This document shows, piece after piece, positions 26,801 through 32,800 of a stretch of DNA of 64,000 nt (position 1 is the first letter of the stretch; each line of letters begins with the position of its first letter). The notes beneath the pieces were generated by a model that was given only the letters and a program-made list of their open reading frames with translations, was not told the DNA's origin and did no database searches. Both the position numbers and the translations under genes were made by a program. The stretch comes from Mytilus edulis (Eukaryota): positions 73,284,001 to 73,348,000 of the forward strand of contig NC_092352.1 in the NCBI RefSeq assembly GCF_963676685.1, read 5' to 3'.

Positions 26801-29800
26801 ACATGGAGGAACATTTGGAGGAAAACTTGTCTTGTGATGCTGTGACATGAAGATATTTGCCTTGTGACATCAAAATTTTCCAGGAAAAAGTACCAGCTGG
26901 AAGCTCATGTATTGGAACAAAAAAAAAACAGTACCATTTTTGAACTCAGATTTATAAAAAAAAACTTTGTTTATCAATGCAAGCCATGACTATGCTAGTT
27001 TTTCGATTACTTCACATTTGCACTTAAATCATTTCAGCATATGTAACACAGTTGGAGTGGATCCAAATGGCAGCTCCTCAGATGTGATATGTAAAGAAAA
27101 TCTACCAGAAATTTACGATTCATTATTTATAGCCATGAGGGACTATACATTAGACAGTAGAGGAGATGTTGGAGCATGGTAGGTATTTATAGCTCTGATA
27201 ACACTCTTGAGGCTTGTCACACAATCATGTTCTGTCAAAAGCACACCATTGGTCCTAGGCAGATATATAGGTCAAGAAATTACCAAAAACTAAATTTTTG
27301 CATTAGTATCTATCTGCCAGCGGTCAGTATGACTAGTTATTCATGTTATTATGATAAAACCTTGTTTATATTATTTTCAGTATCAGAAGGGCCAGTATTT
27401 GTAAATTATCTATGGTTTGTATTCAAAGAGGGATATCACTCTTAGATGAGATTAAAGCTGAGAGACTTCCTCAAGTTTGAGAGACCATTGATGATCAGTT
27501 TATCACTAAAAGTCTATTTTCCTAAGTAAACTTAATGACCTTGGGCAAATGCATATAACGTCAGCATTTTCTCAGTCTACTCATGAGAAAAAGCTATCTT
27601 CATCAGGTAGCAAATAGAACTTACCTGAACTTGATAACAGCTTGTTTTTTGTCTGTTTTAGCATTGCAGAAGTCAACAGGAAAACAGGATATAAACTTGT
27701 GTTTTGTCAGAGAGGCCAGTATGACAGGTTTACATGATATAACCTTGAGTTTTGTCATTTTCAGGGTTAGAGAGGCCAGTATGACAGGTTTACATGATAT
27801 AACCTTGTGTTTTGTCAATTTCAGGTTTAGAGAGGCTGTATGACAGGTTAACATAATATAACCTTGTATTTTGTTAATTTCAGGGTCAGAGAGGCCAGTA
27901 TGACAGGTTTACATGATATAACCTTGTGTTTGGTCATTTTCAGGGTCAGAGAGGCCAGTATAACAGGTTTACATGATATAACCTTGAGTTTGGTCATTTT
28001 CAGGGTCAGAGAGGCCAGTATAACAGGTTTACATGATATAACCTTGTGTTTTGTCATTTTCAGGGTTAGAGAGGCCAGTATGACAGGTTTACATGATTTA
28101 ACCTTGTGTTTTGTCATTTTCAGGGTCAGAGAGGCCAGTATGACAGGTTTACATGATTTAACCTTGTGTTTTGTCATTTTCAGGGTCAGAGAGGCCAGTC
28201 TAACAGGTTTACATGATATAACCTTGTGTTTTGTCATTTTTAGGGTCAGAGAGGCTGTATGACAGGTTTACATGATTTAACCTTGTGTTTTGTCATTTTT
28301 AGGGTCAGAGAGGCCAGTATGACAGGTTTACAAGATATAACCTTGTGTTTTGTCATTTTTAGGGTCAGAGAGGCCAGTATGACAGGTTTACATGATTTAA
28401 CCTTGTGTTTTGTCATTTTTAGGGTCAGAGAGGCGAGTATGACAGGTCTACATGATATAACCTTGAGTTTGGTCATTTTCAGGGTCAGAGAGGCCAGTAT
28501 GACAGGTTTACATGATATAACCTTGTGTTTTGTCATTTTCAGGGTCAGAGAGGCCAGTATGACAGGTTTACATGATATAACCTTGTGTTCTGTCATTTTT
28601 AGGGTCAGAGAGGCGAGTATGACAGGTCTACATGATATAACCTTGAGTTTGGTCATTTTCAGGGTCAGAGAGGCCAGTATGACAGGTTTACATGATATAA
28701 CCTTGTGTTTTGTCATTTTCAGGGTCAGAGAGGCCAGTATGACAGGTTTACATGATATAACCTTGTGTTTTGTCATTTTCAGGGTTAGAGAGTCCAGTAT
28801 GACAGGTTTACATGATATAACCTTGTGTTTTGTCAATTTCAGGGTTAGAGAGGCCAGTATGACAGGTTTACATGATATAACCTTGTGTTTTGTCATTTTC
28901 AGGGTTAGAGAGTCCAGTATGACAGGTTTACATGATCTAACCTTGTGTTTTGTCATTTTCAGGGTTAGAGAGGCCAGTATGACAGGTTAACATGATATAA
29001 CCTTGTGTTTTGTCAATTTCAGGTTTAGAGAGGCTGTATGACAGGTTTACATGATATAACCTTGTGTTTTGTCATTTTCAGGGTTAGAGAGGCCAGTATG
29101 ACAGGTTTACATGATATAACATTGTATTTTGTCATTTTCAGGGTTAGAAAGGCCAGTATGACAGGTTTACATGATATAACCTTGTGTTTTGTCATTTTTA
29201 GGGTCAGAGAGGCCAGTATGACAGGTTTACATGATATAACCTTGTGTTTTGTCATTTTCAGGGTTAGAGAGGCTGTATGACAGGTTTACATGATTTAACC
29301 TTGTGTTTTGTCATTTTCAGGGTTAGAGAGGCCAGTATGACAGGTTAACACGATATAACCTTGTGTTTTGTCATTTTCAGGGTTAGAGAGGCCAGTATGA
29401 CAGGTTAACATGATTTAACCTTGTGTTTTGTCATTTTCAGGGTTAGAGAGGCCAGTATGACAGGTTTACATGATTTAACCTTGTGTTTTGTCATTTTCAG
29501 GGTTAGAGAGGCCAGTATGACAGGTTTACATGATTTAACCTTGTGTTTTGTCATTTTCAGGGTTAGAGAGGCCAGTATGACAGGTTTACATGATATAACC
29601 TTGTGTTTTGTCAATTTTAGGGTCAGAGAGGCCAGTATGACAGGTTAACATGATATAACCTTGTGTTTTGTCATTTTCAGGGTTAGAGAGACCAGTATGA
29701 CAGGTTAACATGATATAACCTTGTGTTTTGTCATTTTCAGGGTTAGAGAGGCCAGTATAACAGGTTAACATAAGATAACCTTGTGTTTTGTCAATTTCAG

Positions 29801-32800
29801 GGTCAGAGAGGCCAGTATGACAGGTTTACATGATTTAACCTTGTGTTTTGTCATTTTCAGGGTCAGAGAGGCCAGTATAACAGGTTTACATGATATAACC
29901 TTGTGTTTTGTCATTTTCAGGGTCAGAGAGGCCAGTATGACAGGTTTACATGATATAACCTTGTGTTTTGTCATTTTCAGGGTCAGAGAGGCCAGTATGA
30001 CAGGTTTACATGATATAACCTTGTGTTTTGTCATTTTCAGGGTCAGAGAGGCCAGTATGACAGGTTTACATGATATAACCTTGTGTTTTGTCATTTTCAG
30101 GGTCAGAGAGGCCAGTATAACAGGTTTACATGATCTAACCTTGTGTTTTGTCATTTTCAGGGTCAGAGAGGCCAGTATGACAGGTTTACATGATATAACC
30201 TTGTGTTTTGTCATTTTCAGGGTTAGAGAGTCCAGTATGACAGGTTTACATGATATAACCTAGTGTTTTGTCAATTTCAGGGTTAGAGAGGCCAGTATGA
30301 CAGGTTTACATGATATAACCTTGTGTTTGTCATTTTCAGGGTTAGAGAGGCCAGTATGACAGGTTTACATGATTTAACCTTGTGTTTTGTCAATTTTAGG
30401 GTCAGAGAGGCCAGTATGACAGGTTTACATGATATAACCTAGTGTTTTGTCAATTTCAGGGTCAGAGAGGCCAGTATGGCAGGTTTACATGATATAACCT
30501 TGTGTTTTGTCATTTTCAGGGTCAGAGAGGTCAGTATGACAGGTTTACATGATTTAACCTCCATGGTTGTAAATAAAGATCCCTCACTACTGTCTTCACA
30601 AATGTAAGTATGAAACCTGTACAGATATCACTTAGTTGGACATATAGTTGTGTATTTTATTTTAAGGTGAGAGAGTAATCGCTTTTATCGGATGTCTAGC
30701 TCTTATGATTACTCAACCCTGCCATAAATATTTTGAAGTAACTCTCATGTACGAAAATGCTAATTGTTATTCATGTATGAAACTTTTTGTTGTAATCTTT
30801 TTGGAACTATTGATGGGCTGTTCTAGAACGAATTGTTTTGGAATGTCGGAAGGCACTTCTTTTAAAATATTGTGGGTGTTGTTAGTTTATAAAGCTAGAC
30901 TGAATATTAAAAAAAAAATCAAGATTTTATGCACGGTGCGGTGAAAAAAAAATGTGCCTCCCCCTATATTTATGTTTAGATCAGCCCATCAGAAATTCTC
31001 TTCTGTTGCAGCAATTTTCTTGTCTTGTAAAAGGGAGGGGGGGGGGCACATTAAAGAACTCTTTCAGTTCAGGTTAAAGTTTTTTATTGCTGCAGGTTAA
31101 AGTTTTTGGTCAAGGTAGCTTTTGATGAAGTTAAAGTCCAATCAACTTGAAACTTTCTAATTTTAATGCCAAATTAGTGTTTTGACCCTATTTTCACAGT
31201 CCACTGAACATAGAAAATGATAGTGCGAGTGGGGCATCCATGAACTATTGACACGTTCTTGTATCATTTGACTTAGCTTACCATGTTTGAACATGTAATA
31301 CAAGCAAGTTGGATAAAAGATCCTTATTTGTTCAAAACGATAAATTGAACAAGGCTTAAACAAAAAACAAACCAATTTTTTGTATGAAAACAACTTTTTA
31401 TAGCTGCATAGTCAATGTTGAATTAGGGTTATTTATGAAGGAACTTGTTTTATTTTACATTGCCCTTCAACAAGACATCAAAGGGAAATAACTCAAATTA
31501 TATCAATAGAAAACTGTATATGACCCATATCTCCTTTTGTTCAGGATACTGTTAATGTTTTATATGTTTATAGATCCAGCAATATTTTCTGTTGCTTACT
31601 ACAGCAGGCCTGTGAGAAGATAGACCGAACAAGATCACATGCTGGTCTTATATTTAGTCAACTGTTATATCACAAGTAAGTTGTGTAAATACACCCAAAC
31701 TTCTATAACTGTTAACCAATTTACTTGTTATACTTATTTAAACATCATTTTACACACCACTATTTAATCATTTGTTGGCTATCGAAATGAACATTTCTCT
31801 GGTAGCTTTACCTAAGATGTACCTGAGTTCTTCCAGAAAATATTTTAACTGTGACATGTTTTTGGTTTGAACTTAGTACTAATAACACCTAATAAACATT
31901 TAAAAAGCTTGCCACACTTTATTGAAAACAAAACTCTTGGTCATAAAACTTTCCTGACAGTAATTGGAGTACAAAATTTGAGGTAGAAACACCAATTCTA
32001 TATTTTGATTGGTTGAATTCTGAGACTGTGTAAGAATAAAACTTGATTTTTACGACTGCTATGCTAGAAATTAAAAAATTAAAGGAAAAATAAAACATAG
32101 AGATAGGTTTATATGAAGCCAAAGGTCCAGTCTGTTGGGTTGCTTTCTCATTGAAACAGAATTGTCTTTTATTCAAAATTATGAATTTATTACTTGGATA
32201 TTAAGCACTTTGCCATGTTGTGGGGTTAAATTATTTTATCTTTTGATTTATAACATTACTACTATCAAGCAGTTTTTTTTTTATTGCAGGCCTGAGATTC
32301 CAAACATACCACATAGAGAAGAATTAGAGAAGATATTTCCAAAGTATGTACTTATTTTAAATAAGAAGATGTGGTATGAGTGCCAAAGAGACTTCTGTCC
32401 ATCCAAATCACAATGTTTTAAAAAGTTCACAATTATAGGTCAAAGTACAGCCTTCATCCTGTAGCCTTGGCTCACACCGAACAGCAAGCTATAAAGGTCC
32501 TTAAATTTACTAGTGTAAAACAATTTAAACAGGAAAACCAACTGATTAACCTATATAAAAATCCAGAAATGAGAAACATTTATGAACCACACCAACAAAC
32601 AACAAGTACTTAACAACAGGCCCCTGAGTAGTACTGGTGCATAAAAATGCAGTGGGTTTAAACACTTTAACATGTTTATCATATTTAGACATATTTAAGG
32701 TAATAAAAAAAATAAGAAATTTTAGTAGCGAAAGAATGCTTTTCAAAGAACACGTTTTGGACAAGTTTTTTGAAGTTATTATTATAAGTTTATTTCTGAG

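Follow-up and report, generated by a model that had tools for sequence, protein, structure and literature searches.

Tandem repeats that lie over exon/intron boundaries have been named 'mirages' in amphioxus, where they are reported from Adh3, the globin genes BflGb6 and BflGb9, troponin C and PGBD5 (Canestro et al., 2002, as cited in PMC3087553 and PMC3902484). The duplicated splice signals of these repeats leave splicing undisturbed, and copies at the edges of the arrays escape homogenisation (PMC3087553; PMC3902484). A related case is the 37-bp variable number tandem repeat (VNTR) in intron 7 of the human F7 gene. Its terminal unit spans the exon/intron boundary, and its other units hold identical pseudo-sites that are functional but silent (Borensztajn et al., 2006; PMC1557585); the repeat served to demonstrate donor choice by 5'-3' scanning (PMC1557585). 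Here, we describe an array of ~47 splice acceptors in an intron of the gene encoding tubulin-specific chaperone D (TBCD) in the bivalve Mytilus edulis. The array lies in a window of 64,000 nucleotides (contig NC_092352.1, positions 73,284,001 to 73,348,000 of the forward strand), and coordinates below count from the first base of this window, with (+) for its forward strand. Our results make it likely, with good though not full confidence, that this array represents an intronic minisatellite of the mirage type, lineage-specific and derived from a splice junction, whose decoy acceptors are skipped in favour of the last one and which the gene tolerates.

The intron was delimited by sequence, pattern scan and RNA at 27179-30519 (+). 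It is 3341 nt long, ~2.8 kb of which is array. Tandem Repeats Finder reports one single array at 27706-30560 (+), with a period of 60, 47.7 copies, 94% matches and a score of 4961. The pattern scan recovered 47 YAG acceptors (38 CAG and 9 TAG), namely 46 decoys and the genuine one, each followed by the exon-like start GGT(C/T)AGAG. The first exon base lies at 27765 for the first acceptor, at 30460 for the last decoy and at 30520 for the genuine one, and consecutive acceptors are 60 nt apart; the sole departures from this spacing are five units of 59 nt, at 27825, 28244, 29023, 29262 and 30281. Each unit combines the first 40 nt of the real exon, identical or nearly so, with a 20-nt pyrimidine-rich intron end. 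The last 41 nt of the array are the start of the genuine exon, such that the array ends at 30560 inside this 84-nt exon (30520-30603 (+), delimited by RNA contigs and homology; its donor reads GTAAGT). As the terminal copy of the array, the genuine junction runs on into the remaining exon. Searched against the 1.37-Gb assembly, the 60-bp unit matches this locus only. A preliminary description of the locus had already reported ~47 intact acceptors in front of a TBCD exon and a unit made of a 20-nt intron tract ending in YAG plus 40 nt of exon start, and both the sequence and our table of unit variants agree with it.

By consensus rules, each unit is predicted to carry all that a 3' splice site needs, namely putative branch points, a pyrimidine tract and a YAG, and hence to form a module of its own. 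Between the last internal AG (unit positions 22-23) and the acceptor AG (positions 59-60), every unit has an AG-free stretch of 35 nt, which holds the putative branch points TTTAC and ATAAC as well as the pyrimidine tract. The last decoy unit (30460-30519 (+)) also provides the branch-point region and the pyrimidine tract for the genuine acceptor at 30520. About half of the decoys are identical to the genuine acceptor both upstream of the AG and over the 40 nt downstream of it, except for the T at 30531. This T, at unit position 12 of the genuine exon, sets the genuine copy apart from all 46 decoys, which have another letter there or, in four units, a deletion.

Sequence homology identifies the host gene as single-copy TBCD, in line with the preliminary assignment. 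Exons were searched singly. The 46-aa translation of the exon upstream of the array (27038-27178 (+)) matches TBCD proteins, including one named "Tubulin-specific chaperone D" by its source and one full-length TBCD from a jellyfish. This exon, located from its sequence and with tblastn searches using P0077 and P0062, is present in a single copy in the assembly; it ends in ...RGDVGA plus TG, followed by a GTAGGT donor, and the intron is in phase 2. With two full-length TBCD proteins as queries, tblastn gave 26 exon matches in collinear order. They start ~21.4 kb upstream of the window, reach 38661, and cover P0062 from aa 23 to 1177 and P0077 from aa 53 to 1136. Pfam searches with single exons gave no match, as expected for pieces of 27-46 aa. 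The exon after the array encodes approximately aa 855-881 of the ~1190-aa TBCD and is at least the 19th detectable coding exon. Hence, the preliminary labels of exon 15 and exon 16 for the two flanking exons were right about the gene, but the number 16 came from a count of its own and does not stand.

The last acceptor, at 30520, is used in steady-state RNA. The exons are present in RNA runs that bear a mollusc label. RNA was aligned to 29990-33900, a region of nine units and four exons, and two raw sequencing runs (X21 and X22) were sampled at ~6% each. Two contigs of separate studies, one from Illumina RNA (X16, 3542 nt) and one from PacBio transcripts (X19, 1692 nt), have matches that start at 30519/30520 and then follow the same path, 30603>31574-31675>32291-32343>33709-33851. 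The single base of overlap, at 30519, corresponds to the G with which the upstream exon ends. Both contigs have zero depth over the nine aligned decoy units. The stranded raw reads of X21 and X22, which carry a second organism label, include five reads on the 30603>31574 joint (X21) and ~3 reads of 151 nt that lie wholly inside units, all in sense orientation. This number equals the background in unique intron sequence; reads from all 47 units can stack on the nine aligned ones, so that ~3 reads amount to intron background. No loose ends at decoy acceptors were reported among the raw RNA reads over these nine units. It is because the contigs start at 30520, the decoys lack depth and the reads remain at background that we assign steady-state splicing to the last acceptor, the one that had been taken as the normal site from the start. 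Normal splicing is thus retained despite intact duplicated signals: at low depth, contigs of two studies use 30520 and none enter the decoys. Since ~3 reads of the second organism label lie wholly inside units, several units exist in that organism as well.

These observations bring the TBCD array close to the amphioxus mirages. Its unit holds a boundary of the host gene, its terminal copy is the genuine junction and splicing is kept, which are among the defining features of a mirage. In amphioxus BflGb6, the 3' end of an intron, together with the 5' portion of the next exon, is duplicated, exactly as in the TBCD array (PMC3087553). The likeness to the amphioxus repeats extends to the many copies that keep AG or GT, to normal splicing, to divergent edge copies and probably to concerted evolution. 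In the TBCD array, units differ from the consensus at 2.26 of 60 nt on average, core units are ~96% like the consensus, and variants are common to non-adjacent units, as expected from unequal exchange or conversion. However, there are also differences. The TBCD array is found in a mollusc, counts 47 copies and sits in an essential single-copy gene, whereas the globin mirages of amphioxus, a cephalochordate, have 3-6 copies. For amphioxus Adh3, length polymorphism and somatic instability of the mirage have been shown. Taken on its own, the TBCD array looks like a tolerated repeat and a further case of the mirage class. A search of the Mytilus literature for junction repeats found nothing specific.

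Comparison with other species points to the exon as the source of the array. The related loci are metagenome contigs of distant relatives, with 50-69% identity. None of 38 such loci has a tandem array, and a single acceptor is present wherever the contig reaches the next exon. The intron occurs at the same position in these relatives, with a length of ~0.1-1.5 kb, and the motif V/IRE(A/V)(A/S)MTGL(H/Q)DLT opens the exon in more than 30 of the loci. As judged from these sequences, the exon is the source and the array a lineage-specific derivative, because the motif-bearing exon with one acceptor and no repeat occurs in more than 30 distant relatives and the unit is unique in the genome. Two relics of the unit in the same intron, detected by nhmmer with a profile of the unit, add to this picture. 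Decayed copies at 27628-27705 (+) form the left edge of the array (E 3.4e-6; 75% blast match), and a decayed copy of ~1.3 units at 27319-27398 (+), 300 bp upstream of the array, retains GGTCAGTATGAC like the real exon (E 5.6e-6). The decoy form at unit position 12 is probably the derived one, because this older relic and the genuine exon share GGTCAGT and the decoys differ.

Repeats of this kind are prone to misassembly, and it might be argued that the array is real but that its length is an artefact, with a copy number that is wrong or collapsed. Minisatellites are often misassembled, and the BflGb6 mirage of amphioxus was (PMC3087553). Yet the 46 units comprise ~30 distinct variants in an irregular, non-periodic order, and the five 59-bp units differ from one another. 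The 88-Mb contig suggests a long-read assembly, and the RNA reads of 151 nt from the second organism label, wholly inside units, imply several units there. We therefore regard an artefactual length as unlikely, although among the alternatives considered here it is the one that we would discount least.

The preliminary description went further and proposed that the array acts as a dial on TBCD output. According to this idea, some transcripts splice to decoys, gain premature stops and are degraded by nonsense-mediated decay (NMD), such that the length of the array tunes expression. The reading frames give this idea some substance. Starting from the phase-2 donor after 27178, frames were followed through each acceptor to the donor after 30603, and a stop is met before that donor from every acceptor except 30460 and 30520. 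The TAGs at 30260-30262 and 30440-30442 account for some of these stops, and the others are due to eight units with GGT-TAA or to the frameshifts that the 59-nt units introduce. The frame computation thus reproduces the earlier claim that only the last two acceptors are productive, and all the features named in its support are present. All decoys but one lead to stops, the 3' splice-site signals of the decoys are identical to the genuine ones in about half of the units, and degraded products are hard to see in steady-state RNA.

The RNA data speak against such a dial, as neither a decoy junction nor a decoy contig was seen over the nine units at low depth. Its splice signals show no sign of selection either. 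The AG is invariant in 46 of 46 decoys, but with ~30 variant types over 27 of 60 sites this is expected ~30% of the time; given the number of variable sites, the invariance is not significant and gives no signal of selection on the decoy AGs. Moreover, the distant relatives lack the array, similar repeats at other TBCD junctions (described below) argue for a mutational origin, and NMD triggered by stops upstream of introns is an assumption in molluscs. A comparison with alternative splicing coupled to NMD (AS-NMD) and its poison exons leads in the same direction. The TBCD decoys resemble these in that they would give premature stops if used. However, known AS-NMD involves conserved elements with detectable regulated isoforms, whereas the TBCD array is young and lineage-specific, and no isoform was seen at low depth. 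Conservation across species, which is expected of AS-NMD elements, is not found in the 38 distant-relative loci. With no contig in the decoys, array reads at intron background and no array in the distant relatives, the proposed dial finds no support, and we consider it improbable. The same low standing applies to a broader version, in which partial use of the decoys would yield unproductive splicing and decay in proportion to copy number. A polymorphic array would then be a heritable modifier of TBCD dosage, and junction-seeded arrays would form a class of expression-modifying VNTRs that arise from junction-targeting mutation.

The only in-frame decoy acceptor, at 30460, would add 60 nt and 20 aa to the product; a TBCD isoform of this kind had been suggested as well, and it might be a functional one. 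The signals of this acceptor agree with the consensus, and its use would produce an exon of 144 nt. Nevertheless, no contig of either RNA assembly covers 30460-30518, the raw-read depth there is zero and no 30460 junction was seen, so that the longer isoform is left without support. In addition, such an insert would repeat a conserved helix segment before running on through the pyrimidine tract (as LCFVIFR), and an open frame across one unit is expected by chance. We consider this isoform very improbable, even more so than the dial.

How, then, would the last acceptor be chosen among so many similar ones? Exon definition from the donor after 30603 offers a reasonable account, with which the choice of the last acceptor fits. 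On this account, exons that begin at decoys further upstream would be too long, at up to 2839 nt. The F7 repeat is instructive here. Like the TBCD array, it places a genuine splice site beside silent copies and offers a natural model of splice-site choice. In F7, however, it is the donor that is multiplied and the most upstream copy wins by 5'-3' scanning, whereas in TBCD the acceptor is multiplied ~47-fold and the most downstream copy wins. Since the downstream site wins, TBCD must follow another rule than F7, either exon definition or signals in the exon body. A further comparison is with NAGNAG and other tandem acceptors, where several AGs likewise compete for one exon. Yet in NAGNAG sites the AGs are separated by 3 nt and rely on a common branch point and tract, while the AGs of the TBCD array are 60 nt apart, each with its own candidate branch-point region and tract.

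Considering all this, a mirage-type history seems the best explanation of the array. A 60-bp stretch over the intron/exon boundary (20 nt of intron and 40 nt of exon) would have undergone tandem duplication, and slippage or unequal exchange would have raised its number to ~47 copies, with partial homogenisation of the copies and decay of the old ones at the left edge. The spliceosome would take the 3'-most copy, which is the only one with the exon body and the strong GTAAGT donor 84 nt downstream; the use of a decoy would give a premature stop, except at 30460. Most likely, the array is neutral or slightly costly rather than a regulator, and a by-product of mutation.

Several points weigh against this explanation. 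Exon length alone fails to account for the skipping of 30460, 30400 and 30340, whose exons would be 144-264 nt, as by this measure the last four or five acceptors are alike. Because these three acceptors would be acceptable by length, signals in the exon body must contribute. A candidate, which we offer as speculation, is the U1-like GAG-GTCAGT at +8 to +16, which is created by T30531 and would be available in the genuine copy only. Furthermore, the depth of TBCD RNA was 3-7x in the 6% sample and contigs drop rare isoforms, so that minor or NMD-degraded decoy products could be missed. The alignment covered nine of the 47 units and began downstream of the upstream exon, and the 27178-30520 joint was therefore seen from one side only. 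The copy number was taken from the assembly. Finally, the absence of the array was judged from distant relatives only; close relatives, represented by the P0002 cluster with an exon 87-89% identical, fell outside the comparison.

Three further junction-derived repeats occur in TBCD besides the 47-copy array. A repeat of 57 bp in 2.7 copies at 6824-6979 (+), found by repeat scan and tblastn, has TTTTAG acceptors before 6830, 6887 and 6944. It consists of an acceptor plus the first ~40 nt of an exon whose body follows the last copy, and each decoy reaches an in-frame TTT-TAG. An older array at 3993-4605 (+), identified by repeat scan and sequence, is derived from a donor and holds 15 copies of 40 bp with 67% matches. 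Its seed, at 3890-3930, is the donor junction ...GACTCCCTGATG followed by GTAAGT, with the exon end at 3906. The copies read GATG and then GCAAAT, and are thus decoy donors without GT, whereas the acceptor arrays keep their AG. The third repeat is a diverged acceptor duplication of two copies with a period of ~77 (L050:5200-5330, ~14.79-14.70 kb upstream of the window start), which reads TTTTCAG and then TTATACCT.ACAGTGAA..ATAAATCCAGAGA, and whose downstream copy continues as exon.

This recurrence at other TBCD junctions suggests a recurrent by-product of mutation, not a device that evolved for TBCD. Three short-period repeats lie on junctions within the gene against ~0.8 expected, a ~four-fold excess under a crude model of random seeding, which is only suggestive of an enrichment. 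A possible parallel comes from P0019, an open frame of 347 aa predicted in another organism, on one ENA contig of 89,670 bp. It contains ~8 tandem, frame-shifting copies of a piece that corresponds to the homologous TBCD exon end read into its intron, and thus resembles a junction repeat of the donor kind, located at the same intron but in another species.

The TBCD array constitutes a clean natural experiment in 3' splice-site choice, with 47 near-identical modules spaced 60 nt apart of which the last is used. In this respect, it mirrors on the acceptor side what the human F7 array offers on the donor side. Viewed alongside the three additional junction repeats of TBCD, it suggests that mirages are common in a bivalve; to date, they have been described mainly from amphioxus. 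It also raises the question why repeats are seeded at splice junctions.

An alternative fate of such arrays has been proposed for the globin mirages of amphioxus, in which a central unit becomes a new mini-exon (PMC3087553). The TBCD array could accordingly be an intermediate in the birth of an intron and exon, and weak donor-like sites do occur within its units (CCA followed by GTATGA, and CAG followed by GTTTAC). However, no such transcript was seen over the nine aligned units, these sites are weak, and an exon bounded by them would shift the frame or be too short. This alternative appears to us the least likely of all.

Some other candidates were examined and rejected. A recursive-splicing ratchet would require GT after the acceptor AG, but GG follows it in 44 of 46 decoys, and the two units with CAG-GTTTAG are weak donors. 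Masking of the decoys by RNA structure was likewise set aside, as folding of the last four units with the exon gave no better result than folding of shuffled sequences (z = +1.0). A transposon between the relic copy and the array is not supported either, since a genome search with the 229-bp spacer gave no more than two partial matches, both of them weak. Rfam searches over 26000-34000 gave no match. Used as queries in protein searches, the 228-aa open frame of the array and the 54-aa frame over the last decoy and the exon gave no match either, a blank that says little.

The introns of TBCD contain two further large arrays, neither of which includes a junction. An array of 36 copies of 28 bp extends from ~0.23 kb upstream of the window start to 776 and begins ~60 nt after an exon donor, and another array of 23 copies of 166 bp lies ~10.7-7.0 kb upstream of the window start (L053). 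Within the exon at 33709-33851, an internal piece of 44 nt (33724-33767) is repeated with 93% identity in the next intron, 1.1 kb downstream (34796-34839). Two intronic segments, 31038-31299 and 32348-32609, have no Rfam match and reach RNA depths in the thousands, compared to 3-7 on the TBCD exons. Most of their reads continue into unlike sequence, and joints that go back by ~134 are common. Both segments probably belong to abundant repeat families, dispersed or tandem, whose transcription takes place elsewhere. Upstream of TBCD, an array of 34 copies of 99 bp with 83% matches is located at L048:2835-6232, ~57.2-53.8 kb upstream of the window start; its period would fit a 33-aa protein repeat such as ankyrin.

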